Made by a program: the position numbers and the translations under genes. Of a DNA stretch of 64,000 nucleotides, positions 165 through 63,687 are shown piece after piece. The DNA comes from Saccostrea cucullata. Lineage: Eukaryota. The notes beneath the pieces are model-generated. The model had not been told where the DNA came from, made no database searches, and saw nothing but the letters and a program-made list of their open reading frames with translations. The stretch is from assembly GCF_032062105.1 (NCBI RefSeq), contig NW_026923836.1, positions 124,001 to 188,000 of the forward strand, read 5' to 3'. Positions within the stretch are counted from its first letter, which is position 1. The number at the start of each line of letters is the position of its first letter.

Positions 165-3100
165 GCTAACAACCCAGTAGCTGTTGGGAAGGCCCGATCT
201 AAGCAACAGAATTTACAGTGTGGTGAATACAGCCCTGATCCCACAGAGGAGAAAGTATTGTGTGTGCAAGTGCACGGTGATGCTTCTTTTTCTGCTCAGG
301 TAGGAATATCGTCTCAGTTGTTTAAGGAGATGAAAGGGTCACACTTTCTTTTATGTCTTTGGATTTTTTATTTGTTTATGATGATGCATTCTGAAGTTAC
401 CATATTCCATAGTAGCTCACCTTTTGTAAAGATTTACTGTTAACACATTTTCAGTGACATATAAAGGAATAAGTTTACTTTTTCCTCATTATCATGCACA
501 AAATGAAGGTTGTAATTCCTAATATATGTGTGTAATGTATGAATGTTTTTATTGTATTTCAAAGGGTATAGTAGCAGAAACATTCAGTATTGCTGAGTGT
601 CCACACTTCAATGTCGGTGGCAGTATACACTTAATTGTTAACAACCAGGTGGGCTTCACAACGGAGGCTTCCAGAGGCAGGTCAGCGGTCAAACACTAAA
701 TAACTTTTAAACTTTAAGAAGTTAAATATCTTTTAAAATGTCCTGCATTTGGCAGAGTTTTATCTTAATTATCAAATATTTGAAAAAGTCTTTTTATTTT
801 GCTACCGCAGTGCATTTCATCCTCTGTGTGATTATTTTACGCAGGTCCTCTAGATACAGTAGCTGTCTGGCCAAAATAAATGCCTATCCTGTTCTACATG
901 TAAATGCAGACTACCCAGAGGTATTGTAAGAAAGATAAGAAAGGCTAAGGCAGTATATTAAAAATATTTACCCTTTTGAAATGATTTACCGATACATATC
1001 TTTAATTAAAACAGAATACCACTGAACATGGATCCAAAAAAAAATTGATGATAAACATTAACTTTATTCACAAAAATTTAATATTGTAGCACCAAAAATA
1101 TTACTTTTTTGAATTCTGAAATTTTCATTCACTTCATGAAGCTAAAAAAAATGCAATAAAAATTTTGCATTGTTTTTCAAACAAGTGAAATCTTAATCTG
1201 AGCGATTTTCAACAGATTTTCAACATTCACAAATTAAATTTCTTGTTTCATTTTCTTACTATGGTCTAGTTACTCTATAGAGGTTTTAACATACCGTATC
1301 TGTTTTATATTGTAGGAAGTTTTACGAGTGACTTCTATAGCCATGGACTACAGGAAAAAGTTCAACAAAGATGTCATCATTGATTTCATCTGCTTCCGCA
1401 AACATGGCCACAATGAACTAGACGACCCCTCCTTTACCCAGCCGACCATGTATAAAGCGGTGAGAGGGAGGGACAGTATTCCCAACCAGTATGCTAACCT
1501 TCTTGTGGTATGTCGTCATATTACTGGTTCTAGCTAAATACATATAAAGAGTCCTTGTCCTATCTCTATGTAATTATTGTATCGTTAGTATGCTTACAAA
1601 CAGATTGGATTCATGCATTTTTCTAAAGAATTTTCTGAAAGGATTTTAAGTGTTCAATAAAAATCCTTCATACCTGTGACGACTATTTTATGTAGATCGA
1701 TGAGTTTTGTTAGGGAAAATACAGTATACGTTCACAACAGTTACATTCAAACTAGCAATAAAGACGTAATAAATCAAGAACTGTGCCACTTATTTATGAT
1801 CTTTTTCTCCATCATTTTTATATTCTAGTCCCAGGGACTGTGTGAGCAGGAGACATTAAATGAATCTGTCAAGACTTGGAATGCTACACTATCTGACCAT
1901 ATGTCTCAAGTGGAATCATATACACCTCAAGTAAAATATTTTATTTATTGGGCCAGAAAGATCTAAAGGTTTAAAGAATTGTAATTATAGTGACTTTACA
2001 GAATTGGTTCTTGAAATTTTGAAAAAAGTGCTCAATAACAGTTACAATATATTTAATTAAAACAGTACTACTGATGTAAGGAATGAAAATGTAGGATTAA
2101 CATTGTCAGTTACTTTAATAAGCATCTGTTTTGTAGAAATTTGACATCATTTACTCTAATTGCTATCTGTTTTGTAGAGATTTGACCTCCAGAGTCAGTG
2201 GAGTGAGCTGGTACAGCCAGGAGACATGATAACACACTGGGACACAGGGGTCTCTGTAGATCTACTGAAATACATAGGACAGAAGTCTGTAACCTGCTCT
2301 GATCTGGTGAGTGTACATGAGATTGTGTGATAGTATTGGTGAAAATTTTGGCTTAGGGTTTACATGTATGTATTTGAAGAATTATGGTCTTCTTGTATTA
2401 TTTATTCCATATTGTTGGCAGCATCTTTCAGTCTTTTAGCAAATTCTAATTCAGAGGGTTTTCATTTTATTATTGATGCAGCCATAGCAAAATTAAATTA
2501 GGAAAGCTTCAAAAATGGATGAAATTTTCACTAAAACAGAATTCTTCCCTTTTTGATGTTTTATAAGTAAAGGAAAAGGCTTTATGCTCAAGATGAAAAT
2601 TAGACACGTCTATTTGATATTGTAGAAAATCCACCCCAATGTACAGAAGGCCCATGTGGACCGTCGTCTGGAGAGGATGAAGGAGGGACGGGGGCTGGAC
2701 TGGGCCACAGCAGAGGCTCTGGCTTTTGGTTCACTGCTCTACCAGGGTAAGCTTCACATAACCTAAACTAAAATGTTTTAAAAATTCATTTATGACAGTG
2801 CAGGTGCTAAAAATGCACAAATCTGTGTCAAATTTACATACACAATGACAATCACATGAAACATGTACATGTATGTTCAGGAAAATCTTTTACTGTGTAT
2901 TCCTGTATGGGGAAGAATAAATCAATTGAAGAATTTTAAAATAAGTTATTCAAACACTTTCTTAAGCAAAGATAAATCCTAGGTGGGGCAAAAAATGACT
3001 TGATTTTGGATACCTTCATGAGGGTGGTTTTTTTTTGTAGGTTATAATGTTCGAGTGAGTGGACAGGATGTTGGGAGGGGAACCTTCAGTCACAGACACG

Positions 3101-6100
3101 GTATGCTGGTGGACCAGGAGACGGATGAGATCCACATCCCCCTAAACCACATCAAGGAGGGTCAGACAGGCTTCCTGGAGGTAAAATAGAAAGGGTTATG
3201 ACTTTGGAGGGGGGACTTACCAGATATAACATCAGGAGATCAAAAAAGGGTTCTATAGCAATGAAGCTTAAGTGTCTGGTTTATATGGTGAATGTTACCT
3301 TATCTATAACACCATCCATTTAATATTTGGCTGATACAGTAAAACATGCTTTAACATTCCAGGAACAGTTGATTTTGTTTCTTCATGAATATAACGTCTT
3401 ATATCTGTTACGTTCACATACCATGGGAAATGAAAATCACTGCACTGTAAGAATCGGTTTATTTTTAGCAAGCAATAAGCATGTCTTACTGTATTGTTAT
3501 AAATTATAAACATGTTGTACATGGTACTTTTCCAGCTGGCTAACAGTGCCCTATCTGAGGAGGCGGTCCTGGGCTTTGAGTACGGGATGAGTATAGATAA
3601 CCCTAACAACCTGATTATCTGGGAGGCCCAGTTTGGGGATTTCTTCATTGGAGCACAAATCATCATAGATACCTACATTGCCAGCGGAGAATGTAAGTAG
3701 ATTACTGACAGACAGTCATATTAGCAGATTTTGCTTTGAAGAATTGAAATTTTCATTGAACAGAGCATTAAAAAATTGAAAATTTTATCTAATATGTAGC
3801 TGTTTATTTCACTGTTTCAAGAACTCTATTTTTCTTTGTTTTGCACTGGGAATTTTATACTCATATTATGAAGTCCCTGTTTCACTAAATTTTATCTAAT
3901 GATTGGTTATGGATAACAATGATATAGCTCCTAGCATACATACTTTTGGTCTTTCAGTGAAATGGCTGCTGCAGACAGGACTAGTGATGCTATTACCTCA
4001 TGGAATGGATGGAGCAGGACCAGAACACTCATCCTGTAGGATAGAAAGGTTCCTACAGGTTGGGATTTTAACAAATTAGGATTACAATCTATTTTCTTCA
4101 TCAGACTTTACATTGACCATGCAGTATTGGTCAGGTGGTATTCATAAATGACCTTGACATGTATCTGTTGTAGATGTGTGACAGCAGTGAGGTCAAAGTG
4201 GACGGAGACAACATTAACTTGCAGGTCGTGAACCCCACCACCCCCGCACAATACTTCCACCTCCTCAGGAAACAGGTGCTGTGGTACTCTGTACTGATAA
4301 AAATCAGTCCATAATAAATGGACAACCAAAACAATTCAGAACACAAGATAATATTTTCCTGTAGTTTTTTCACCTGTGCTGAGTTCTTGGAGATGATTGA
4401 ATCACAAATTATTCTAACACTTTTAGATGGTACGTAACTTTAGGAAGCCCTTAGTAGTGGTGGCTCCAAAAATCTTACTGCGTCTGCCAGAGGCCACCTC
4501 TACTCTTGATGAAATGGCCCCTGGAACCACCTTCCTCCCAGTATTTGGCGACCCTGATGTGTCTGCGAAGAATGTCTCCAAAGTTATTTTCTGCTCTGGC
4601 AAACACTACTACACACTAGTAAAGGAGAGGGAAAATCTCAAACTTCAAAATGTTGCTGTGATTCGTTTGGAGGTACATATTGTAAATAATTATACATGTA
4701 TTAAATACTGAATAAGAATGTGATTATTATTAAAATAATGATATTCATTTTTTAAATGGATGTCTATGAGACTGCAAACCAATTATTCTGAGAATTTTCT
4801 TGGAAATGAATTGTCAATTTTATGATAAAATATCCAGATTGCGTGTTTTTTTTTCTGTTAAATCCTTTATGTGGGTAAAATGAAATCATTTCTTAAAGTG
4901 TTGATGAACTGCAAACAGAGCTTAATAATCATAATTTTTTTAAAAAAATAGATTTCTTAAAAATGCAGCTGATTGGTATTTAAAGCTGTGTATGCAAAAA
5001 ACTTATTCTTTGAGAGAATTTATTTGACGAAATGAAAAATCATTTTGTCCCTTAAAAATGCTCCGACAGCACATTATAAATACATGTATGATTAATATTC
5101 TGGGATTTCTCTTTCAAGAGCTTGTGTCCATTCCCGGCTTCAGAAGTACAAGAAGAGCTGAATAAATTTTCTAATGCCACAGGTAAAAAAAAAATATCTG
5201 AAGCTACTGCTTTCTTTTGTTTACTATGTGTATTTGAGACCTTTCATTCTTGAAATTCACCAGCAAATATTAATCTCCATAAAATGGAGGTAAATAAGAT
5301 AAGAAGAAATCATTATAATTTTTATGTACAATATTATGATAAATATAGCTATCCAGTTAAAACATTATTAGTTACTAGTATGTAGACTGAGGGATAATAC
5401 AAAAATATGTATTTTTTTTCAAGGACCTCACATATTTCCATATTACCCCTCTAAGTGGCTACATAACAAATTTATCCTGTCAAAGATTTTTTAATAAAGT
5501 TCTTTTTCTCTGAGGTAACAAATTGTTCTGTAACAATTGTTTACATTGTGACGTCATTTTTTGTTCATATGACGTCAGTTATTAGGCTTTTGCGTGTTCA
5601 AATGAAAACAACTTATCTGTGCTGTATGGCACGCGGAGGGGATTTGATGTGATGTGTGGTGGGTAGGTCATGTGGAGGGGGCACATTAGCAATATGATGT
5701 GGGTAGACAGCATAGTATTGATTGATACAGTATTTTTCTCTACCAATGAAATTTCACAATTTTTATCAGAAGCAGAATAATGCAGCATACAGTATCACTA
5801 TTTATTTTCACAATTAAATTTGTGTAAATGGTGTGTGCCAGGAAATGTTTGTAAGTTGAATAAGGTCTCAAAAACCCACAAATATAGATCCAATGCAATG
5901 TGAACAAAGTTGGTTTACAGTTACATGTACTTGAATATTGTACATAACTAAAAGACATTAAGTACTGGTAATTATTTATATATCGGTTTTTGTAGACTTT
6001 GTGTGGAGTCAGGAAGAACACAGAAACATGGGAGCCTGGAGTTTTGTGTCACCTAGATTTGAAAATGTTTTAGGAAAGAAGGTAAATTATTAAGAAAGGC

Positions 6101-7280: not shown

Positions 7281-7509
7281 CTGTAAATCGTTTTAATTCC
7301 ACGAAGTTAAAATTTCACGATATCTCTAAAAGTATCAATCGCGATTGTTTTAATTTCACGCTGGAAGAAATTATTTTAAGTCTCTTTAAAGCATTTAAAC
7401 ATCTTTGAAAAGTAATGATAGCATTCACGATGGGTTTAATTTCGCGGAAAAATGATAAATCGCGAACATAGCGAAATTAAAACCATCGTGAATATTTGCC
7501 AATCTACAG
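7281..7509. mobile_element. TA-flanked MITE (Tc1/mariner-like)
   Basis: TA|CTGTAAAT...ATCTACAG|TA, with internal TTTAATTTCRCG repeats. Confidence 0.65.
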
Positions 7510-8059
7510 TAAATGTAAATATTTTCACCCAAATGAATATATCATGATGAGATTATTTTGTGTGTTTAACAGACTGTGTATTCTAACTTTTTAAAGGTAA
7601 TGGATGTATTTTTGTTTTTCTTTAAATTTAATAATCTAATGGTTTTGACACTATAAATATATTTGTGATATTTTGGTTATTAATTATTGTGCCATTTTTG
7701 TGTGAATAAAAACTCAGAACTCCCAAGTATCTTGTTTTTTATTATGCCCTCCTCACCAAAGATTCTTTTGATGTTTAGTGCCAAGGATTTCATTTTCTTA
7801 ATTGAATTCTTTGTGACTTTTTCATTACCATAAAAATATTCTTGACTTCTTGACTTCAGATTGACCTAGCTACTTTTGTTAGACTAACTTTGACCTTGAA
7901 AATTTTTTCATGTTTATTCGTTGTGACAAGGACTTTCTTTTGGTAACAAGATTTTTGGCTTACTTACTTTGGAGCTGACCTACATTGTAGCTAGAAAGCT
8001 GCATTTGAAAAACATGGTTTTAAGCTGCCATGGGAAGAGGAAGGGGAAGCATCTGTTTT

Positions 8060-8588
8060 AACAAGAGGCACATGGGCCACAACGCTCACCTGAGTAGCTT
8101 TGACCATGCTGTTCTTTACCAGATTTACCCCAAGTAATACATATTGTGACCCCACCCTACCCCACAGGTCATGATTTGGACAATTTAAAATCTACATTAT
8201 CCCAGGATGTTTTCACATAAGTTTCAGCTTTTCTGGTCCAGTGGTTCTTGAGAAGTAGATTCTTCAATTCAGTTCAATTCATTTATTGACAAAGATTTTT
8301 CCTTTTAAATTCTTTGTAAAACTTTGATTCCCTAGTGGCCCTGCCCTACCCCCACGGGTCATGATTTGAACAATTTAGAATCTACACTACCCTGTGATGC
8401 TTCCACATAAGTTTCAGCTTTTCTGGCCCAGTGGTTCTTGAGAAGAAGATTTTTAAAGATTGTTCCTATATTTTCTATGTTAAACTTTGATTCCCTATTG
8501 TGGCCCCACCCTGTGAAGGGACTTGGCCCTTAATTTTTACAATTTAAACTCCCCTTCACCCAAGGATGCTTTGTTCCAAGTTTGGTTA

Positions 8589-8625
<37 letters not shown>

Positions 8626-8682
8626 GTGAAAAGTTTACAGACGGACAGAGAGCTAGACAGAAGGACAGACATAATGTGAATT

Positions 8683-8723
<41 letters not shown>
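8060..8723 (-). mobile_element. Non-autonomous Helentron/HINE with ~2-3 internal ~166-bp Cg170/HindIII-like repeats
   Basis: One end is AACAAGAGGCACATGGGCC (hairpin) plus subterminal GCTCACCTGAG. The other end is GAGCCTTCGGCTCAGGTGAGCTAAAAA, with a (GACA/GACG) microsatellite just inside it. Confidence 0.8.
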
Positions 8724-8962
8724 CATCTTATTTCTTCTCTGTTGCAGATGTGCAAATAATCCATCAACTGACCATATTTTGGGACAATCGGTTTCATTTG
8801 GATAAAGCCTTCTTTTTACTCTTAATCCTTGTTTTGATTGCAAAGGGTATTTCTTGTAAGTTCACTTCACTTGGTACACTAATCTAGTACCGGTATATAT
8901 TGTATATTTTGTTATGATACATGTATCAAAACATGAACAATTCTTATTAATTCCTCATTTAA

Positions 8963-9165
8963 TTTTTAGTTTGTAAGAGCTGGAGGCTTAAGTGTCAGAG
9001 CTTTTCTTATTGAAATCTGTCATCATAAACTTTCATTCATTTTCATCTTCTTCTCCAAAACCACTGGGCCAACTTTGACCAACTTGCCAAAAAGCATCTT
9101 TGGGTGGAGGTGATTCAATTTTGTTCGAATGAAGATCACGCCCTCTTTCAAGGAGAGATCATTCA
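8963..9165 (+). mobile_element. Degenerate 5' fragment of the same Helentron family in the opposite orientation
   Basis: TTTTTAG..GAGCTGGAGGCTTAAGTG..AGCTTTTCT..CTTCTTCTCCAAAACCACTGGGCCAA is the reverse complement of the 8560-8723 type end. Confidence 0.6.
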
Positions 9166-9212
9166 AAATTGTTGTTCCTTGTAACCCTATTGCAACAACT
9201 GATTAAGTAGAG

Positions 9213-12200
9213 AAACCAGAAGTCTCTGTCGAGACTGTAGCTCTACTGGTTTGTACTTATAACAAAGGATGAGAAAAGAAGCCATTGCCATCAGACCAAA
9301 ACTGTAGAGGGAGTATCATGTTAAAGGAATTTCACAGAAATTTCTATTTTTAGTAACAATGGTAACACTGTACATCGAAATCAAAATCCAATGCACTATT
9401 TATGTATCTTAGTGTAGTCTACTTGTGTGCCAAGTTATATTGAAATCAGACCAAAACTGTAAAAGGAGTAGCATTTTTAAGGAATTTCACAGAAAATTCT
9501 ATTTTTAGTAACCATGGCAACACCATTCATTGAAATCAAAATTGAATGCACTATTTTTAGCTCTTCTGAGCCAAAGGCTCAAAGAGCTAATGCTATGGCC
9601 ATTTGTGTGGTGTGCGTCGTGCGGTGTGCGTTAACTTTTTAGAATATGGGCCATAACTCAAGAACCCCTTGGCCAATCAGTGTCAAATTTGTCACAGGGT
9701 ATCCTTGGCCCAAGGGCTACCATTTATACTAAAATAAGGGTTGGGACCCTAAAACAAGGGGAGATAATCAGGAAAACAAAACCAAAAGTACTGGTTGCAA
9801 AAAAATCTTCTTCTCCAGAACCACCAGGCAGATTTTCACCAAACTTACATACAATGATCAGGATATGTTGAAGATTAAAAATTGTTCAAGGCATGACCCT
9901 GGGGCAAAGGGCGTGGTCTCACACTTCAAAGTTGACCTAAATTTACAATTAATGAAAATGTCTATATTTTACTTACTATAAGGACTAGGATCATCAAATC
10001 TTGTAAGTAGATGCATCTTAGGACTTCACATCATGTTAACTCAAAAGTAGGTCACGGTGACCTACTTTTTTAATTTTGCGGGCATTTGTTTACAAATTGA
10101 TTTGAAGGCATATTTAGGACACTTTAAGGCCTATGATCATCAAACTTTGTCAGTTGATGCATCTTGGGTCCTTGAACAACGTAACTTAAAAGTAGGTCAC
10201 CGTGACCTACTTTTTGAACTTTATGACTTATCCTGTTTAAAACATTTCATCCCATTATTTCAGACACTGAGAGGGTTAGAATCATCAAATCTTGTAAGTT
10301 GCTGCATCTTGGGACCTTAAAACATATTTAAGTAAAAGTAGGTCACTGTGACCTACTTTTTGAACTTTATGACTTATCCTTTTTAAAACATTTCATCCCA
10401 TTATTTCAGACACTGAGAGGGTTAGAATCATCAAATCTTGTAAGTTGCTGCATCTTGGGACCTTAAAACATATTTAAGTAAAAGTAGGTCACTGTGACCT
10501 ACTTTTAGAATTTTGCAGGCATTTGTTTTCAAATTGTTTAAAAGGCATATTTTGATTACCTTCAGACCAATGATCATCAAACTTGGTCAGCTGATGCATC
10601 TTGGGACTCTGAAAAATGTGACCTACTTTCGACATTTTATGGCTATATTTCAGTATCTTAGGTATTTCTTGGCTTAGAATCATCAAACTTTGTGAGTTGA
10701 TGCATCTTGGGTTTTCGGAGAGTGATGACCAAAAATTAGGTCACGGTGACCTACTTTCAATATTTTATTGCTATATTTATGTATCTCCAGTACTTTTCAG
10801 CTTAGAATCATTAAACTTTGTCAGTTGATGCATCTTGGGTTTTGAATGTCGACCAAAAAGTAGGTCACGGTGACCTACTTTTGACATTAAATGGCTATAT
10901 TTATGTATTTCTGGTACTTATCGGCTTAGAATCATCAAACTTTGTTAGTTTATGCCTCTTGGGTTTTCAGAGAATGTCGACCAAAAAGTAGGTCACAGTG
11001 ACCTACTTTTGAATATCAGGTAATTGGCTTAGAATTATCAAACTTGGTTAGCAGATGCATCTGAGGCCTCTGATAAATGTCAACCAAAATGTAGGTCACG
11101 ATGACCTACTTTTGACATTTAATAGCTATATTTACTATCTCCAGTACTTATCGGCTTAAAATCATCAAACTTTGTCAGTGTATGCATCTTGGGTTTTCGG
11201 AGAATGTTGACCAAAAAGTAGGTCACGATGACCTACTTTTGACATTTTATGGCTATATTTAAGTATCTCCGGTACTTATTGGCTTAGAATCATCAAACTT
11301 TGTTAGTTTATGCCTCTTGGGTTTTCAGAGAATGTCGACTAAAAAGTAGGTGACGGTGACATACTTTTGAATATCTCCGGTACTTATTGGCTTAGAATCA
11401 TCAAACTTTGTCAGTTAATGTATCTTGGGTTTTCCAAGAGTGTAGACCAAAAAGTAGGTCAAGGTGACCTACTTTTGAATATCTCAAATACATATTGGCT
11501 TAGAATCTTCAATCTTAGTTTGTCTATTATGTATCTTGAGTCCTCAGAAAACTTCAGTCTTAAAGTTGGTCACCATGACCTACTCATGTTTTTTTTTTTT
11601 ATAGCTTTATTAAAATATCCTAGTCCTAATTGGCTAAGAATCATCAAACTTTTTATCAGATGATGCAGCTTAGGTTTTAGGATACTTAGGGTTAGAGGAT
11701 TCAAATACAAGTGATAGGTTGTACAATTTATCAGAAGAGCGATTCAAGGCCCTTGGGCCTCTTGTATGTATCTTAGTGTAGTCTACTTGTGTGCCAAGTT
11801 ATATTGAAATCAGACCAAAATTGTAGAGGGAGTAGCGTTTTTAAAGGTATTTCACAGAAAATTCTATTTTTAGTAACCATGGCAACACAATTCATCAAAA
11901 TCAAAATCGAATGCACTATTTTATGTATCTTAGTGTAGTCTACTTGTGTGCCAAGTTATATTGAAATCAGACCAAAACTGTAGAGGGAGTAGTGTTTTAA
12001 AGGTATTTCACAGAAAATTCTATTTTTAGTAACCATGGCAACACAGTTCATCGAAATCAAAATCCGATGCATTATTTTAGGTATCTTAGTGTAGTCTACT
12101 TGTGTGCCAAGTTATACTGAAATCAGACCAAAACTGTAGAAGAAGTAGCGTTTTAAAGGAATTACACAGAAAATTCTATTTTTAGTAACCATGGCAACAC

Positions 12201-12569
12201 CGTTCATCGAAATCAAAAACCGATGCACTATTTCATGTATCTTAGTGTAGTCTACTTGTGTGCCAAGTTATATTGAAATCAGATCAAAACTGTAGGAGGA
12301 GTAGCATTTTAAAGGAATTTCACAGAAAATTCTATTTTTGGTAACCATGGCAACACCGTTCAAGGAAATCAAAATCCAATGCACTATTTTATGTATCTTA
12401 GTGTAGTATACTTGTGTGCCAAATTATATTAAAATCAGACCAAAACTGTAGGAGGAGTAGCATTTTGAAAAATTGTTTACAGACAGACGGACAGCTAGAC
12501 AGACGGACGGACGACGGACACCTTACTATCGCATAAGCTCTTCTGGTCTCTGACCAGTAGAGCTAAAAA
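9213..12569 (-). mobile_element. Non-autonomous Helentron-type element with 156-bp internal tandem repeats, interrupted by a nested element
   Basis: The left end has hairpin AGTCTC-TGTC-GAGACT and subterminal AGCTCTACTGGT. The right end has the inverse ACCAGTAGAGCTAAAAA, preceded by a (GACG/GACA) microsatellite. The repeat register is 11784/11941/12097/12253/12409. Confidence 0.8.
9557..11764 (+). mobile_element. Nested non-autonomous Helentron-type element with 103-146-bp internal repeats
   Basis: It begins TTAGCTCTTCTGAGCCAAAGGCTCAAAGAGCT and ends TCAGAAGAGCGA..AGGCCCTTGGGCCTCTTG. It splits the host repeat GCACTATTT|TATGTATCTTAG within a T-run with no TSD, as expected for Helentrons. Confidence 0.82.
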
Positions 12570-13842
12570 TCTGGTCCATTTTTATGTAGAATTCATCCAT
12601 ACAACTGACAGAATCATGAGATGACCAATTTGCACACTATAACAACAAAACCTTTGCCTGTTTATTCCTTTTTTATTTTCATGACAATACAATATTTTAA
12701 TAACATGCTCTTCTGAAGACACCTGCAGAAGAATATACAGCAACACTTTATTGGAAAATAGCACAGGGCTTAGGAAAGGGTTTAGTTTTCTTTACATTTG
12801 ATAAGCTTGGTATCATGGTTTTTTTCATTGGATAACAATTACTTCAACTTATAGCTTTAACTTTTCCCAACAAATCTTGGACATGGAAATACTTCTCCAT
12901 TTCCATGATTTCTCTAGCTTTCAGCTACTTTCTAAATAAAAGGTCAAATATTTATAGTAAAACCATTAAGAATAAACCAAGGTTGATACACATATATACG
13001 GTACATGAATTATAAATAAATTGTGTGAATACCGGTAGAATTATGTAAGACATACTTTACTGTGTTAATTACTTTCACTTTAATATCTGTATACCGGTAT
13101 GTACTGTACGTAAAACTGGGTTTTGCTGGAATAAAATCATTGTGGTTTTCTATAAAGCCGTCCCAGGATTCTAGGTTCATGCATCGTAAAATTTAAATAT
13201 TTTTTTCTAATTAAAATGTAAAATCTTGTGAGGATTGGTTGGTTATTAACAAGTACAGGTCATATTATCTATTCCCATACTGGTATACCTAAATGCATGC
13301 CTGCATAGCACATCTGGACAAAACAACTCGAGTATATTTTACAATATGATCAGCATATATTCATATATATGACACAATAAACCTTTGAAAGTCACATGAT
13401 TAATCACATGACCAATATAATTTCATATCTTGCATGCATTATGAACACACCACTCTGGCATGATACTGCAAACTGAGAAAAAAAAAGTTCTATATATAAA
13501 ACATCAGATACATATCAAATAATATAAAGAAAATGAATATGACAGTAATGCTTAAAATGAAGATGAACTGCTGGCTTGCTTGAATACAGAAATAAAGCTG
13601 GGAAAAAATATGGATCAAAAATTTCACATGCTCAAGGTACATGTACTTTTCATGAGTTCCAACACTGTGGTTTCACTTTTTTCCTGCTATCCACATCTTC
13701 TTTTTCCTTGTTAAACGGAACCAAACATTCAGCACAAATAATGGATCGTATAGTCAGCAGTGAATATATTTGTTTTAACAGACTTTTAGGCACACTATTG
13801 CAGATCACAGATTTACACTTGTAAAGTTAAACACATGTAATT

Positions 13843-16800
13843 TCAGTACCATCCTCCAGTTAACTTATGAAATAATTCCTCATTGAGAGTTTGATTTTTG
13901 TCCGATGATCTCATGGAAAGGAAGATATATCCTCCAATGAACTCATGCACCACTTTACAGTCAGCACTCAAACAAGCAAAGGTCAGAGTCTCCCCCTCAA
14001 ATTCTAAAATAACATGTCTCACTTCCCAGTTCACATGCCATGATTTCAGACTTCCGTAACGCCATGTTTTTATGGAATCACCAGAGTTCAAGTCCATTCG
14101 CATTATTTTGTTTGGCGATACTCCCAAGAGCTCCTGTAAGAAAATACAAATGCATTCAATTTACATTTATAATACAATGACATAAAATACTATACACATT
14201 GTTTTCCCTTTCTTTTTCTCTTGTGCATTTTTTACCCAAAGATTAACAGTTTTTTCCAAAAACTCTTTACAGGCCCATAAATGATGAGGGTTAAAATAAG
14301 AATGGGAAAAATTTGCTCAAAATTTCTTTCAAGTGGTTAATCAAGACTAAAATTTACTGTAAATTAAGTTTGTCATTGATGAAAAAATAAATACCTCTTT
14401 CTTGGCATTCTTCTGCTTGATGATGAAGTAGCTGATGCCATAATCAGGAAGAGACTGCCAGGCTTTTATAAACGCCATCTTGGAATCCATCAGAGGCAGA
14501 TTCTGGACATTAGCATGGGCCTCTAGTATTCTCTTCTCCAGCTTAAAGGGAATAATGAACAAATTTAATATAGCAGGTTTGCACCTCTTTGAAAATCAGT
14601 AAGTTATGAGGCAAAGCTTTGAATTTTCTTGTTCGGAGGGCTATAAGATATAGAGCTGTTCTGTCTGTAAACATCTGATTTCAAAATGATTTCAATTAAT
14701 AAACAGTACATGTACAGTGTACTTAAAATTACATGTACTTAAATTTATACAGGGCTGTTTAATTAGGGTTCACAAATGTCAAAATAATAATGCTCCATGT
14801 ATATGTATTGCTCTTGCAATTTTTATTTGTAGAGAATATGCTGAATTTAAATATTCTTCCTTATTTCTTGAAATAGAAATTATTGAATTGTCTATCTAGC
14901 AATAGGACCTACTTGTTTCCCTTTTAATTTCTTGTAGAACCTGGGTGCCACATAGTCCTCTGGGTTCTTAATGTCCACCTGTATGGGGGTCACAGGGGCA
15001 TCTGTGGGGGTCTGTCGGCTCAGCAGGGTCCTCAGACTCTGGACCTCAGTGTCGTAAGAACTGTCCGCCATTGTTTTGCCCTGGGAAGCTAACTTACATG
15101 CTGCCATCCACTTGCAATATTCATCTTCCTGAAAAATCATAACATACCACACATTTATACATGGTTGAGAAAAAATATAATTGCAAGCTATTTGAGGAAA
15201 TATAATTAACAGAGCTTAAATGAGCTTAAATCTGTTAACTTTACTCTTATTGTAAACTAAACTGAACTTTTGGTCATTATCTCACATCAGATATAAAGAA
15301 ATATGCAGTATCCAAGATGTGAACCTTGGCTCCTTTCTTCACAATTTGTTTATCTTACCGTTTCAAACCTCAGCCACAGTTCAGACATTCCCTCAGGTGA
15401 TGGGATAAAAAGCTTTATTCCATACTTAGCATGAGAAATGTTCAGATCTGGTTGAGCTTCACAGCCTGTAAAAAGTTGAATGGATAATCTTGTCTTGATT
15501 TAATACACCTTCATTGAAAGAATCTAACACCTAAGCTTCAACTAGGAGCAATGATCATGAAGTAACGGTACACATATTAGATATGCATGTGAGAATAAAA
15601 ATTGTTTATAGTATTGAAATATACTATCTTTAATATTTTTAGCTTGTCATGCAACATCAATGGACTAAAATAAACTATAGCAGACAGACAAAGGAAAAAA
15701 AAAATTCCTTGTAAGGCCATATAAAATTGAAATCTTGGTTCTCAGGCCCGCGCGCATCCGTTTTGAGGTAGCCGCATTGCCGATTTTATTGTATTTTTGA
15801 TAAAATAAAAAGTTGGTGTTGCGGAGACCAATGGGAAAAAAAATTCCTACCTCATTTGTTTCGTAGTTTAGTATTCAAATATCACTTCCGGTAGCCATTT
15901 ACAATGAGATTTTGGCTACTTCGTTTGAAAATACATTCGAGGACATTACCTACGATTTTTACACGCTGTTAAGCAATAGATAAAGCAGAAGTTTTGACCA
16001 GAAATGGAAAGTATATCTGTGATTAAAAAAATTATCTTTATGTTTAAGAAATATATTAAAATTAAAAAAAATACCTTTTCTACTTTATTGCCAATAAAAT
16101 GAAAAATAAAATGCCGCCCTCCCGCATCTGTTTTGGAGAAAATTGGCCTGAGAACCAGGGAATTAAATATAGATAGCCTAATATGTCACAGCCTGCATTT
16201 CATTTTTCTCCCTTTTTTATGATCCCATTCAACAGCTGTTCCATGACCTTTGACCTTACCTTTGATGGATATTTTCATCATTGGACTTCCTGAAGCCTCC
16301 TCCTGACTCTTGAAGAAAGCTATAAATAAATCCTTACAGACACACCAGGCTCTCTTGTAGCTCTTCAAGGTGAACTTTTTAGGTCTGAAATAAAAAATTC
16401 AAAGTTACAACACCTGCAGAGAACTTTCTTTTCTTAGATCATCTTGATAATTTCTATCATTGATTTCTAAAATTTCCCATCCATTTATTGTGAATAATAC
16501 TTTCAATATTTATCTGCTGTCCATTTAGCTGCAGAACTGTAGCTTTCTGCTTGAGAAAATTTGGTGGTATAAATCGAAGGTTTTTACAATATATGGAACT
16601 GTAGCTCTCTGCTTTATCTGTCTGAATTTTCTTGAACAGAGAGCTACAGTTCTGCAGCTACTGTCCAATATAAATGAATGTTAACTCTCTTCATAACTTC
16701 ATACTTTCAATAAATACTTTTAAACTTTATTGATAGTTATAAGTAAACTTACTTGAACCACTTGACATAACCACCAAGTTCTGGTACTGATGTGATGTCC

Positions 16801-59973: not shown

Positions 59974-60999
59974 TTATACAGGGGTACTCCTGCCTGACTC
60001 GCATCCATTGCCTACAGGAAAATCAAAATTACCTTATCACTTACAACAAAAACAAAACACTTCTGTCTGATTTCAAATTATAATGGAATGATGTTCTGGG
60101 GCTGAACAAATACTGCTGCTTGCCACCCAAGGGTAAGTGCTTTTATGGTAGGACAAGGTCTTCACAAATCTATTTGTCAGCCCTTGGTATTCATTTCATA
60201 ACAAGAGGCCCAGGGGCCACAGCGCTCACCTGAGCACATCGGGCTTGAATTTACCCCCCCCCTCCAGGTGTTCATCATTTGAACAAACGAGAATCTACAC
60301 TACCTGAGGATGATTCCATATAAAAATCACTAATCAATTCTTTGAAGTACTTGAAAAGAAGATTTTAAAAGGTTTCCCTATATATCCCTATGTAAAACTT
60401 GGGTCGGCCATTTTGGCCCCATCCTAGCCCCGGGGGGCATCTTTTTAACAAACTTGAATCTGCACTACCTGAGGATGATTCCACATGGGTTTCATCTTTC
60501 CTGGCCCAGTGGTTCTTGAGAAGGATTTTTTAAAGATTTTTCTTATATATTCCTATGTAAAAGTTGGGTCGGCCATTCTGGCCCCACCCTTGCCCCGGGG
60601 ATCATGATTTGAACAAACTTGAATCTACACTACCTGAGGATGATTCCAAATGAGTTTCATCTTTCCCGTCCTAGTGGTTCTTGAGAAGAAGATTTTTAAA
60701 GATTTTTCCTATACATTCCTATGTAAAACTAGGGTTGGCCATTTTGGCCCCACCTTTTCCCGGGGATCATGATTTGAACAAACTTGAATCTACACTACCT
60801 GAGGATGCTTCCACATGAGTTTCATCTTTCCTGGCCTAGTGGTTCTGGAGAAGAAGATTTTTTAAACATTTTTTCCTATATATTCCTATGTAAAAGTTGG
60901 GTCGGCCATTTTGGCCCCACCCTTGCCCCGGGGGTCATGATTTGAACAAATTTGAATCTACACTACCTGAGGATAATGCCACATGAGTTTCATTTTTCC

Positions 61000-61032
<33 letters not shown>

Positions 61033-61563
61033 GAGATTTTTCCTTTATATTCCTATGTAAAAGTTGGGTCGGCCATTTTGGCCCCACCCTTGCCCTGGGG
61101 TCATGATTTGAACAAAATTGAATCTGCACTACCTGAGGATGATTCCACATGAGTTCCATCTTTCCTGGCCCAGTGGTTTTGGAGAAGAAGATTTTTTAAA
61201 CATTTTTTCCTATATATTCCTATGTAAAACTTGGGTCGGCCATTTTGTCCCCAACCTTGCCCCGGGGGTCATGATTTGAACAAACTTGAATCTACACTAC
61301 CTGAGGATGCTTCCACATGAGTTTCATCTTTCCTGGCCCAGTGGTTCTGGAGAAGAAAATTTTTAAATATTTTTCCTATATATTCCTATGTAAAACTTGG
61401 GTCGGCCATTTTGGCCCCACCCTTGCCCAGGGGGTCATGATTTGAAAAAACTTGAATCTACACTACCTGAGGATGCTTTCACATGAGTTTCATTTTTCCT
61501 GACCCAGCGGTTCTGGAGAAGAAGATTTTATTAAAATGCCATTAAATTTTTAACAAATTCATG

Positions 61564-61630
<67 letters not shown>

Positions 61631-61666
61631 AACTTTGTACCAAGTTTGGTTGAAACTATAGTTCTT

Positions 61667-61702
<36 letters not shown>

Positions 61703-61721
61703 AACAACGACAACGACGACA

Positions 61722-61753
<32 letters not shown>

Positions 61754-63687
61754 ATTGAGCCTTCGGCTCAGGTGAGCTAAAAAGTCCAAAGAATTAATTG
61801 CTAAATATATCCAGCTTAATTCAGTAAATGAGTGACTTTATACATGCAAATTGTATTTTTACCATGTTGTATTCCAATGGGAATTAATTATTTTACAAAA
61901 CAGTTCTATTAAAAACCATATATCAAATCAGGTCTGACAGCAAACTTCTTCATAATTTCAAATCATAACTTTTTAAAAGAAATCATTTCTAGCAAGGATG
62001 ATTCAGGATAAATACATACAATGTATATCTACAAGTTTTTACCTAATCGTTCTGCAGGCCCCCATATCCTAACCGTGCCATCATCTGAGGCACTGGCCAA
62101 CATGCCTGGTAGCTTGGGATTCCAGTGAACACAGTTAACGGTCCTAGAATGGCCCTCCAGGACGGCAATTGGCTCCTCTTTTCTTAGATGCCATACATAA
62201 ACTTTGTGATCTGAAAATATTTAAAATGTACATTAACTTATATATTAACTTAAAGTTGATTTCCTTTTACACATCCTCAATTTTAATATACAGTGGACCC
62301 TCATTTATCCGGATGCTTTGGTTCCTAGTCAATTTGTTCGGATATGTGAATCATCCGGATATCTGATTTACCAGTTAAACAAGACAAAATAACTTTTAAA
62401 AAATTTGTTCCGATGAAAAATCGTCGGATACTGAAGCATCCGGATATCTGGTGTCCGGATATCTGAAGGTCCACTGTATATTTTACAGTACTGTATGATA
62501 TGTCACTAGTTCTCCTTAAAAGATGGACATCTATTAAAGACTTCAGAAAACAAATAAACCCATATGTTGGTCCACTTTAACATTTCTTTCTTGTTCTGTT
62601 AATGAATTTTACTTCTTGGAACTGACAAAGTGAAGTTCCACTGTCTATATAAAGGCCATTGGTTTGAATCCTACCTAAAATGCTAATATTCTCAACCTTA
62701 TTTTCATACCAAGTCATGAAGTTAATGAAATATGAACTTTACTGCATTTCATGAACTAGTATCTAATACACAATTCATTTTCTCCAATAAGTTTATTAGT
62801 ACTAACCTTCACTTCCACTGGCAATGAAGTCTTGATTTAGTCCTCCAAAACATGAATGTATTGTGTAAAATCCCTGTGTAACCCCTTGAAATTTCCTTAC
62901 TAAGCACCTATCATGCAAGTCCCATAAATGAATTCCCTGAAATAATGGTGCAGACAATTAAGGGTATTGTAAGATTTTGAAACAAAGGGACACTCTACCC
63001 TTTCAATTTCAGTTATGACCCTAAAAATTGAAACAATTCATAATTTGATCATTAAAAAAGATAGCTTTTAACTGATTGAATATCTCACAGTGCAAGTGAC
63101 TAAACTATATAGTCTACCCTCATGAACATTAAAATTTTTAATCCATATATCTAAATCACACCAAGAGGAAAACTTATTAATAGTTGTGTTGTTGGATCAA
63201 TGCAAGATGCAAGTACATTTGAATAGCTTCAAAAAGTCAAAAACCTTTTCATGTACATACCTGAGTAGCTACATTGAGTAATATTAATCTTCCTGTATCA
63301 TTTAATGTGAAAGACATGACTGGATGATCTTCTTGTATTCTGAAAAAAAAAAATCAAGGAAATTACAACATCCTTCAAAAATCTAAGTAAATATAAACAT
63401 TTCTTAGAGTAAAAGAAAGTTTACTTGTATTATGTTTTGAAAGATATAGTGTCTTTATATTCTTGTGTTATAATGAGAATTGAAGTAAGAGGTAATTCTT
63501 CATATTTGATCATGAATTCAAAACTTCTAACACCGTCTTACACATTGAAGTCTGCAAGTTCGTCAAAGTTATATCCCCTGACGCGATGATGGGTGTCGGC
63601 AGCGAGGACTGTTTTCCCGTCATTCTGGCAGGCTATACATTGTACACGCACACCTTCCCAGGAATCCAACACATTGCCGTCAAGATC
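59974..63687 (-). CDS. WDR26: WD repeat protein 26 (CTLH/GID7), 3' portion; continues beyond window end
   Basis: Not in the ORF track. Exons (minus strand): 63687-63542, 63339-63261, 62936-62807, 62210-62043, probable last exon 60011-59974. Peptides are [79 protein letters not shown], ending [12 protein letters not shown]. The last exon is less certain than the others. Confidence 0.93.
60200..61783 (-). mobile_element. Non-autonomous Helentron/HINE with ~8 tandem 165-168-bp Cg170/HindIII-like satellite units, in the last WDR26 intron
   Basis: It has the same ends as 8060-8723. The GAATCTRCACTACCTGAGGA register is 60456, 60621, 60786, 60954, 61120, 61288, 61454. Confidence 0.85.
62291..62476. 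mobile_element. pogo/Tigger-like MITE
   Basis: TA|CAGTGGACC ... GGTCCACTG|TA, with internal TCCGGATA repeats. Confidence 0.8.

Follow-up and report, generated by a model that had tools for sequence, protein, structure and literature searches.

The closest described systems to the locus analysed here are the older oyster ‘pearl’ elements and the Cg_HINE elements that Vojvoda Zeljko et al. (2020, PMC7492417) described in Crassostrea gigas. In the available text of that study, Cg_HINE has a modular design, with one group in which the flanks are related but the repeats are not, and a modular design is likewise described for DINE-1 in the available text of PMC4067079. Cg_HINE thus bears out the statement in the original prediction that satellite-bearing Helentrons are known in oysters. 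As described there, Cg_HINE elements have a 5′ subTIR with a complementary inverted repeat, a GTCY-type microsatellite, a 3′ subTIR with a palindrome, and central satellite-like repeats of ~140–180 bp; they use T-rich or TT targets without duplication, lie in both orientations and insert into other repeats. The elements reported here are alike in these respects, with a 3′ palindrome whose fold is clear in E2, and Cg_HINE also has monomer classes of 166–167 bp and 146–147 bp. They differ in residing in another genome (1.17 Gb), and Cg_HINE_1–13 were compared by described layout, not sequence.

The window, the whole 64,000-nucleotide stretch of Saccostrea cucullata DNA analysed, holds three non-autonomous Helentrons (HINEs; E1, E2 and E3) and one fragment at 8062–12569, with a 2-oxoglutarate-dehydrogenase-like gene (+ strand) on one side and kindlin (− strand) on the other, the two genes being convergent. 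The features are as follows.

1328–4711, + strand: exons of a 2-oxoglutarate dehydrogenase E1-type gene, originally named DHTKD1.
8062–8723, − strand: E1, an old HINE copy (from layout, fold and genome copies).
Parts of E1, − strand, from sequence: 3′ terminal piece 8062–8083; 3′ subTIR 8084–8094; degenerate core ~8146–8617; microsatellite 8637–8671; 5′ hairpin 8689–8717; A-run 8719–8723 (T-run on the element strand).
9016–9172, + strand: HINE ‘conserved block’ fragment, counterpart of the segment behind the microsatellite in E1, E3 and E5.
9213–12569, − strand: E2, a HINE with a 156-bp core, split by E3 (layout, fold, genome copies).
Parts of E2, − strand, from sequence: 3′ palindrome 9221–9236; 3′ subTIR 9240–9250; core 9284–9556 and 11765–12469; microsatellite 12480–12519; 5′ hairpin 12537–12563; A-run to 12569.
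9508–12354, + strand: five X-box-like GTAACCATGGCAAC sites in E2 monomers, by exact match, starting at 9508, 11873, 12029, 12185 and 12341.
9557–11764, + strand: E3, a young HINE within the 156-bp array of E2 (layout, fold, genome copies).
Parts of E3, + strand, from sequence: 5′ hairpin 9560–9587; GT-rich microsatellite 9604–9631; internal block 9632–9985; 13 monomers of 103–146 bp 9990–11639; 3′ subTIR 11731–11740; 3′ palindrome 11748–11759.
10043–11476, no strand assigned: core palindromes AAAAGTAGGTCAC-N-GTGACCTACTTTT, one per E3 monomer (fold −10.5 kcal/mol, z −7.3).
13843–14127, − strand: last (C-terminal) coding exon of kindlin (E 1e-35 to FERMT2).
26190–26880, + strand: degraded array resembling E2, with X-box-like sites at 26232 and 26538, by sequence match.
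60202–61783, − strand: E5, a fifth HINE outside the cluster, with a subTIR common to E1 and a 166-bp core repeated 7.6 times.

The + strand exons match E1_dh, Transket_pyr and OxoGdeHyase_C, domains that give the family only and do not separate DHTKD1 from OGDH. The kindlin mRNA appears to end near 12656–12660 (one molecule ends at 12660, one contig starts at 12656), ~90 bp from E2. In a single oligo-dT run, RNA depth was ~0 over the unique spacers 7599–7996 and 8793–8991 and 40–100 over the kindlin 3′ UTR. The stretch is a pile-up of HINEs in an untranscribed gap between two convergent genes. The claim of four elements or fragments in 4.5 kb, one nested in another, was confirmed by their coordinates and by gap-free restoration of the host array (see below).

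The subterminal repeats lie exactly where they had been predicted: GCTCACCTGAG at 8084 with its reverse complement at 8707 in E1, GCTCTACTGGT at 9240 with its reverse complement at 12553 in E2, and GCTCTTCTGA at 9560 with its partner at 11731 in E3. In all three pairs, and in the pair 60224/61767 of E5, the 3′ subTIR is the exact reverse complement of the 5′ subTIR. Folding energies of the 5′ hairpins range from −10.4 to −12.3 kcal/mol across E1, E2, E3 and E5 (z −4.4 to −7.5), values equalled by 0 of 200 shuffles, and behind each hairpin lies a microsatellite (61697–61732 in E5; E1–E3 as listed above) that is GTCY-type when read on the element strand, matching Cg_HINE. Tandem core units measure 156 bp in E2, 103–146 bp in E3 and 166 bp in E5, and their orientation relative to the ends is constant, E1 agreeing with E5 and 22 complete E3 copies with one another. 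The 3′ palindrome is present as sequence and constant among the E3 3′ ends listed; its fold beats shuffles in E2 (z −3.4), while those of E3, E5 and E1 are at shuffle level (z −0.6, −0.8 and +0.5). The common layout originally proposed therefore stands for 5′ hairpins, microsatellites, tandem cores and subterminal repeats, but three of the four 3′ ‘hairpins’ do not exceed shuffles.

Outside the window, 25 of 25 distinct E3 5′ ends listed read as a T-run followed by TTAGCTC or TAGCTC, and the 3′ ends listed, from ~25 distinct places, all read ...CTCTTG and then T. With a T after every listed E3 3′ end and a T-run before the 5′ ends, insertion falls between Ts, with no target duplication. The longest open reading frame in the elements, 98 amino acids, lies within repeats, and an Rfam search of the elements gave no match. 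In the genome, at least 150 Helitron_like_N matches exceeded the cut-off, many within open frames of 2000–2800 amino acids. These observations support the assignment of the elements as Helentron-type and non-autonomous, sharing an end architecture around satellite-like cores that are not related to one another.

E1 has genome copies of ~80% identity (8861 first-look candidates), and the similarity of reads stops at 8723, with loose ends. The 166-bp unit attributed to it is a period of its family; the units of E1 itself are degenerate, with offsets of 189 and 170 bp. The 9016–9172 fragment matches internal segments of E1, E3 and E5, and only query positions 294–450 are repeated in the genome, at ~84% identity (1080 candidates). 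For E2, genome copies stop at query 420–421 and begin at query 30–33 in separate comparisons, and 6,984 E2-type 5′ hairpins were found genome-wide. The corresponding number for E3, whose genome copies are 96–98% identical, is 1,578. With E3 removed, the E2 array aligns gap-free to intact E2 monomers (96/100, 91/99 and 93/100 identical). None of 54 other E3 flanks lay in E2 sequence, so no nesting preference that would build composite RFX+ER modules was seen.

The ERE consensus is AGGTCAnnnTGACCT. It occurs perfectly in 10 E3 palindromes, starting at 10049, 10194, 10340, 10486, 10738, 10862, 10990, 11093, 11220 and 11456, in agreement with the predicted ERE in 103–146-bp units. Complete E3 copies have 7–15 perfect EREs each, and the genome total is 18,516 (control 108), almost all of them within arrays of this kind. 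The repetition of motifs stems from tandem duplication of a single ancestral unit rather than from independent events. A 27-nt palindrome with 13-nt arms forms a hairpin in which the ERE provides the 12-bp stem and its spacer the 3-nt loop. In shuffled controls, a perfect ERE occurred in 0 of 20,000 monomers and in 308 of 500,000 palindromes with permuted arms. Chance does not account for the perfect ERE of one palindrome, a point against the explanation that we prefer below.

Across 12 paralogous monomers, the half-sites departed from the paralogue consensus at 3/144 positions, the outer stem at 11/156, block 1 at 40/396, the loop at 9/36 and the rest at 270/804. The half-sites are the least variable columns, below the outer stem at p = 0.054, a pattern that a dimeric receptor site would also give. 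That the palindrome is the best-kept part of these monomers points to constraint at the level of the element. In dispersed orthologous monomers, non-CpG changes affected 40/3432 half-site, 48/3431 outer-stem, 141/9711 block 1 and 353/18221 other positions; the gap between the half-site rate (0.0117) and that of ‘other’ columns (0.0194) weighs little because mis-assigned paralogues would inflate the latter. CpG changes in the same monomers numbered 59/424 in the ERE spacer vs 100/814 elsewhere. The ERE thus showed no site-specific constraint beyond its surroundings, with half-sites resembling the outer stem and the spacer CpG decaying like others. No compensatory stem changes proving a structural role were seen in the palindrome, and a literature search found no paper on receptor binding or receptor-dependent activity of these EREs.

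The X-box, a motif for the cilia regulator RFX, has the consensus GTNRCC(N0-3)RGYAAC. As predicted for the 156-bp unit, GTAACCATGGCAAC, which fits this consensus, occurs five times in E2. It is kept in 65 of 71 sampled monomers, an X-box arose in 13 of 20,000 shuffled monomers, and the variant has 12,956 genome copies vs 2 for the control, nearly all in such arrays. Its conservation rank is 14 of 143 windows, not above the rest of the monomer. By hand cross-tabulation, 22 of 42 E2-type 5′ hairpins checked had no exact X-box nearby, so subterminal repeat and motif are not strictly linked. The proposal that the elements amplify and spread motif arrays holds for their massive spread as sequence. 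The GC box ranks 57 of 159 windows. GGCCCCACCC, found once in E1 and four times in E5 (60202–61783), is present exactly as the KLF/SP-like motif claimed for the 166-bp unit, but in only 8 of 51 monomers; the family consensus is GGCCCCGCCC, of which GGCCCCACCC is a CpG-decayed form. CCMCRCCC is found in 37 of 51 monomers; shuffles give it in 441 of 20,000 and CACCC in 6,110 of 20,000. As sequence the transcription-factor payload is real; a functional payload is not supported by these comparisons.

We consider it probable that the locus is a pile-up of HINEs in which the palindrome matters to the element, the motifs are hitchhiking cargo and inserted copies decay more or less neutrally. Each non-coding element would be moved in trans by the Rep/helicase of an autonomous Helentron, whose recognition signals would be the hairpin of the 5′ subTIR and, at the other end, the 3′ subTIR plus palindrome; insertion is between two Ts, with no target duplication. 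E1 (~80% identical to its relatives) is old, E2 (~95%) younger and E3 (96–98%) youngest, its insertion point being a T-run within an E2 monomer. The tandem cores would be intrinsic cargo that multiplies along with the element, so that a short motif of the founding monomer is now present thousands of times. The palindrome may be kept for DNA-level needs of the element, the candidates being formation or maintenance of the tandem array and handling of a single-stranded intermediate, rather than as a host regulatory site. X-box and GC box would be ordinary parts of their monomers, and copies would decay about neutrally after insertion, with CpGs lost fast.

The arrays might instead be working docking sites, for ER/ERR-type receptors on E3, RFX on E2 and SP/KLF on E1 and E5. 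Such sites might benefit the element, for example by opening germ-cell chromatin for replication, or serve as host-recruited enhancers. The consensus matches are exact and numerous (18,516 vs 108; 12,956 vs 2), but motif names were picked post hoc among hundreds of possible ones. EREs and X-boxes are rarely produced by shuffles, and half-sites are conserved with a free spacer among paralogous monomers; in dispersed copies, however, the outer stem is preserved as well as the half-sites, and the CpG of the spacer is lost at the pace of other CpGs, giving no sign of germ-line protection. Neither X-box nor GC box is a conservation peak, the ‘KLF’ form is a decay product, and about half of the checked E2-type hairpins have no exact X-box nearby. 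Oysters do possess ER and ERR homologues, thought to be ligand-independent in the available text of PMC5041327, and Drosophila Helitron-type elements are reported to supply binding sites, DINE-1-like elements of Drosophila miranda supplying sites for the MSL complex (cited in the available text of PMC4067079). On balance we find the docking of host factors doubtful. It is also rather doubtful that, with two young HINE families supplying nearly all consensus EREs (~18,500, in arrays of 7–15) and ~13,000 X-box-like sites, selection on the element itself keeps the palindrome constant for its recruitment of an ER/ERR-type receptor that is constitutively active, while the X-box recruits RFX, both opening chromatin where the element has to be copied, with the host receptor network flooded, buffered or rewired by transposon arrays as a by-product.

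At the other extreme, motifs and palindrome might have no role, having arisen by chance in founding monomers and hitch-hiked since; the conserved blocks would then be a product of array homogenisation through unequal exchange and conversion. Post-insertion decay does look neutral, weak motifs are common in shuffles (CCMCRCCC 441 and CACCC 6,110 of 20,000), and among very many repeat families inspected some are bound to hold a named motif. A perfect palindrome with 13-nt arms is nevertheless hard to ascribe to chance (fold z −7.3), no other part is as well kept in monomers whose remaining sequence differs by 34% and in length, and homogenisation would not pick out 27 nt; we regard the absence of any role as improbable. 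Misassembly or segmental duplication, rather than a series of transpositions, is scarcely credible as the origin of the cluster: many copies do lie on short contigs, so repeats break the assembly, but E3 ends have 54 distinct flanks, the termini are exact and constant, the host E2 monomer is restored gap-free, and contigs from three other DNA runs contain the families in abundance. The pile-up of HINEs with an element-level palindrome remains our preferred explanation.

The anatomy is ordinary, adding new families to the satellite-carrying Helentron derivatives that scatter tandem repeats in oyster genomes. What is notable is the count, in that almost every perfect ERE of a 1.17-Gb genome (170 times the control number) belongs to one family of ~1,600 copies, and ~13,000 X-box-like sites belong to a second. 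If the molluscan ER, thought to be hormone-independent, binds these sites, a single transposon would dominate any study of the ER cistrome, of endocrine disruptors or of motif enrichment in this animal; should the receptor leave them unbound, the counts caution against taking motif matches in bivalve repeats for regulation.

MITEs in plants and Alu and ERV families in mammals are transposon families that amplify transcription-factor motifs. As in those cases, a single oyster family multiplies a single motif genome-wide; for the earlier families binding or function was measured, whereas the oyster arrays are described as sequence, and a hairpin lies where their motif does. The available text of PMC7492417 contains ‘transcription factor’ 0 times, and neither this term nor ‘binding site’ occurs in two oyster satellitome papers (0 times each). 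The oyster elements resemble the DINE-1/HINEs of Drosophila and mites, as described in the available text of Thomas et al. 2014 (PMC4067079), in composite structure, TT insertion and T strings at the boundaries; the sequences are different, and matching autonomous Helentrons were identified there, whereas the oyster partner is a predicted one. These elements are a known kind with new families, and the combination of modular ends with cores of unrelated sequence has been published for Crassostrea gigas.

Four elements or fragments make up the cluster at 8062–12569 of the window, as the original prediction had observed: E1, a 157-bp fragment, E2 and E3. A further complete element, E5, lies elsewhere in the window. 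E1, E2, E3 and E5 are non-autonomous Helentrons (HINEs) with subterminal inverted repeats (subTIRs) and tandem cores.

Anatomy of the HINEs (coordinates, element strand, feature)
8062–8723, minus: E1, delimited by sequence reading, TRF, an inverted-repeat scan and exact motif positions
8062–8083 and 8084–8094: E1 3′ terminal piece and 3′ subTIR GCTCACCTGAG
E1 core: about 2.5 degenerate units, at offsets of 189 and 170 bp
8637–8671 and 8689–8717: E1 microsatellite and 5′ hairpin, followed by an A-run up to 8723
9016–9172: HINE fragment of 157 bp, the sole genome-repeated part of 8723–9212 (about 84% identity; 1080 first-look candidates)
9213–12569, minus: E2
9221–9236 and 9240–9250: E2 3′ palindrome and 3′ subTIR GCTCTACTGGT
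9284–9556 and 11765–12469: E2 core of 156-bp units
12480–12519 and 12537–12563: E2 microsatellite and 5′ hairpin
9557–11764, plus: E3
9560–9587 and 9604–9631: E3 5′ hairpin and GT-rich microsatellite, then an internal block up to 9985
E3 core: 13 monomers (M1–M13) of 103–146 bp each
11731–11740 and 11748–11759: E3 3′ subTIR TCAGAAGAGC and 3′ palindrome GGCCCTTGGGCC
60202–61783, minus: E5, a complete HINE with the subTIR of E1, a 166-bp core repeated 7.6 times and a different, ACG/ACA-type microsatellite

The boundaries of E2 were set by 40 genome copies per end, which stop at query positions 420–421 and start at 30–33. Folding energies of the 5′ hairpins lie between −10.4 and −12.3 kcal/mol, a stability equalled by none of 200 shuffles. 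The 3′ palindrome is one weak point of the HINE assignment, folding better than shuffles in E2 (z −3.4) and no better in E3, E5 and E1. A terminus ending in GCCTCTTG is shared by E1, E3 and E5 and absent from E2, and a conserved block after the microsatellite is common to E1, E3, E5 and the 9016–9172 fragment. In E1 and E5 this block is part of the monomer, which favours repeats derived from the element’s own sequence. A known-RNA or coding origin of the cores was rejected (no Rfam match at E up to 0.1; longest open reading frame 98 aa).

Excising E3 leaves flanks that, once joined, match three intact E2 stretches without gaps (96/100, 91/99 and 93/100 identical), so that its removal restores an E2 monomer; the clean nesting that had been described is that of E3 within the E2 array. 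No empty-site joint for E3 was found among the 15 read joints listed of about 1,900, reads being swamped by family-level matches. Searches of the 1.17 Gb genome returned 8861 candidates for E1, 2302 for the 5′ part of E3 and 4737 for that of E2, first-look numbers that should not be taken for copy numbers. Counts of exact patterns are more solid: allowing one mismatch at most, the genome has 1,578 5′ hairpins of the E3 type and 6,984 of the E2 type (reversed controls, 0). Genome copies were sampled non-randomly, as the 40 best-scoring candidates per search. Copies of E3 at other loci sit between unrelated flanks yet keep the same ends: all 25 distinct 5′ ends listed from outside the window read T-run plus TTAGCTC or TAGCTC, and the 3′ ends listed from about 25 distinct places there all read CTCTTG followed by T. 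These constant ends bordered by Ts indicate insertion between Ts without duplication. Identity to relatives among the best-scoring copies (about 80% for E1, about 95% for E2 and 96–98% for E3) gives the order of events as E1, E2, E3, in agreement with the position of E3 inside E2.

The genome-wide motif counts are the striking result. The exact motifs attributed to the cores were all present: E3 holds ten perfect estrogen response elements (EREs; AGGTCAnnnTGACCT), E2 five X-box-like, RFX-type sites (GTAACCATGGCAAC), and the KLF/SP-like GC-box motif GGCCCCACCC is found at one site in E1 and in four monomers of E5. A degraded E2-like array at 26190–26880, with internal deletions, has kept two X-box-like sites (26232 and 26538). 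Across the genome, 18,516 perfect EREs were counted against 108 for the reversed control, 11,454 of them with the E3-type extension GTAGGTCA...TGACCTAC (control, 2), and the X-box variant has 12,956 copies against 2. The 22 complete E3 copies (1725–2703 bp) carry 7–15 perfect EREs apiece, 227 in total; a mean of 10.3 multiplied by 1,578 hairpins yields about 16,000, and by this reckoning the E3 family and its fragments would account for almost every perfect ERE in the genome. At the level of sequence these arrays are genuine and present in very large numbers, and they are candidate binding sites. Perfect EREs also recur every 147 bp at G000:C7:45388–45843; their spacer is TCT/TTT and they lack the E3-type extension, which would fit either another repeat family with EREs or an earlier subfamily.

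Shuffle controls were run for the three named motifs. The perfect ERE arose in none of 20,000 dinucleotide shuffles of an E3 monomer, the X-box pattern in 13/20,000 and GGCCCCACCC in 9/20,000, against 441/20,000 for CCMCRCCC and 6,110/20,000 for CACCC. When the arms of a 13-nt-arm palindrome of the same composition were permuted, an ERE appeared in 308 of 500,000 cases and one of six dimer motifs, a small, arbitrary set, in 2,201/500,000. In this narrow sense the exact motifs are not due to chance. The names were probably chosen post hoc, among hundreds of motif classes and very many repeat families scanned, and palindromes, abundant in rolling-circle elements, would favour matches to dimeric sites. 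TRF on 267 kb yielded just two further candidate HINE cores, too few for an out-of-sample test. Tandem repeats unrelated to E1–E3 adjoin HINE copies at L054 2882–3235 (171-bp units) and L034 1–463 (147-bp units), and could represent the cores of further HINE families.

Linkage of payload to family, which had been proposed, is loose for E2. All five E3 hairpins listed on the first contigs adjoin ERE arrays. In a hand cross-tabulation of E2-type hairpins on contigs up to C152, 22/42 have an exact X-box no further than about 1.3 kb away; in the other 20/42 the sites may be mutated, or the core may be a different one or absent. Nesting of E3 into E2, which had been proposed to build composite RFX and ER modules, is not habitual. 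Of 54 distinct 150-nt flanks of E3 elsewhere, from the copies most like the query, four lie in HINE sequence (two in E1/E5, two in E3) and none in E2, and the composite in this cluster is most readily taken as a one-off accident of the T-run target.

There is constraint on the palindrome at the level of the element, seen in the paralogous monomers of E3: the 12 that carry it are otherwise divergent in both sequence and length (M5, with half a palindrome, was omitted).

Differences from the paralogue consensus among E3 monomers
ERE half-sites: 3/144
Outer stem: 11/156
First conserved block: 40/396
3-nt centre: 9/36
Rest of monomer: 270/804

The half-sites differ from the first block with p = 0.002 and from the outer stem with p = 0.054. 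The palindrome has a stability like that of the terminal hairpins (−10.5 kcal/mol, z −7.3), and the loop of the predicted hairpin coincides exactly with the ERE spacer. A conserved stem with a free loop is therefore the same pattern as conserved half-sites with a free spacer, and these data fit a hairpin and a receptor site alike. Arm changes, inspected by eye, are uncompensated in M6 and M9 and less clear in M13, too few events to count. For the structural reading, the oyster satellite literature (PMC8268682, PMC11136912) offers that palindromes promote tandem-repeat formation, a role the E3 palindrome might share. As to the receptor, oyster ER and ERR homologues are thought to be constitutively active (PMC5041327).

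In dispersed copies, departures from the group consensus were counted in 11 groups of orthologous monomers from other E3 copies (17–34 copies each), omitting M3 (3 copies), M5 (0 copies) and matches below 90% identity or not full length.

Departures from consensus in dispersed E3 monomers (count, rate)
ERE half-sites, non-CpG: 40/3432, 0.0117
Outer stem, non-CpG: 48/3431, 0.0140
First conserved block, non-CpG: 141/9711, 0.0145
Other columns, non-CpG: 353/18221, 0.0194
CpG outside ERE spacer: 100/814, 0.123
CpG within ERE spacer: 59/424, 0.139

The half-sites are thus kept no better than the remaining palindrome in dispersed copies. A lower rate than in the other columns is common to all conserved blocks, and mis-assigned paralogues would give the same deficit. 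CpG sites in these copies (L014–L066) show roughly sixfold more change than non-CpG sites (0.12–0.14 against 0.012–0.019), and the spacer CpG is not spared. Such decay would fit methylated, unoccupied germ-line DNA, suggests germ-line methylation of many young E3 copies and points towards the arrays being passive cargo. In near full-length matches, the X-box is kept in 65/71 sampled E2 monomers, yet it comes 14th among 143 windows for conservation. At the GC box the E1-family consensus is GGCCCCGCCC (rank 57/159), and GGCCCCACCC, present in 8/51 E1-family monomers, looks like a product of CpG decay.

The cluster is flanked by plus-strand exons with E1_dh, Transket_pyr and OxoGdeHyase_C domains, a domain-level match to the predicted DHTKD1, and by the last exon of kindlin on the minus strand (13843–14127; E 1e-35 to FERMT2 chains), also as predicted. 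The stretch 7400–13350 was compared with three sets of contigs and one oligo-dT RNA run, the best read run reaching 0.33 of sampled words and none reaching half; the repeats were covered at family level in both orientations. Just 90–95% identity in 25,674 of the 32,642 RNA reads on this stretch indicates that these derive from other copies. RNA depth is about 0 in the unique spacers 7599–7996 and 8793–8991 and 40–100 in the kindlin 3′ UTR. RNA molecules stop at about 12660 and a contig begins at 12656, which apparently marks where the kindlin mRNA is polyadenylated, some 90 bp away from the E2 boundary. The empty spacers and these molecule ends place the cluster just outside the kindlin mRNA, with no read-through in that RNA sample. 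Elsewhere in the window, 51255–51916 and 48827–49514 hold a minisatellite with some 20 units of 34 bp and an inverted, foldback-like ACCCAAAAGG/TCCTTTTGGG array pair about 480 bp apart.

We found no publication tying EREs to transposable elements in oyster, or Helitrons to ATAC-seq in bivalves. “Transcription factor” and “binding site” each occur 0 times in the oyster satellitome papers PMC8268682 and PMC11136912; “transcription factor binding” occurs 0 times in PMC7492417, the Results and Discussion parts of which carry no mention of such motifs. A full-text search with two motifs for published oyster satellites returned unrelated papers only, published consensuses sitting in figures or supplements. 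At least 150 Helitron_like_N matches lie above the cut-off in the genome, many in open frames of 2000–2800 aa, which makes a transposase source plausible.

The layout of the window elements agrees, the fold of the 3′ palindrome aside, at every point with the DINE-1/HINE composite drawn in PMC4067079. With the eleven Cg_HINE elements of Crassostrea gigas, described with the HINE layout in PMC7492417, they have in common an 11–12 bp subTIR matched by a complementary inverted repeat, microsatellites of the GTCY type, repeat units of roughly 140–180 bp, a 3′ subTIR with a palindromic sequence after it (a clear stem-loop in E2), and T-rich or TT targets without duplication. Shared ends with unrelated cores, the modular design of the original prediction, are real and already in print, since PMC7492417 describes Cg_HINE groups with related flanks and unrelated repeats. 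Judged by description, with Cg_HINE, Cg170 and pearl as candidate relatives, the families reported here are probably new members of a known element type with a known modular design.
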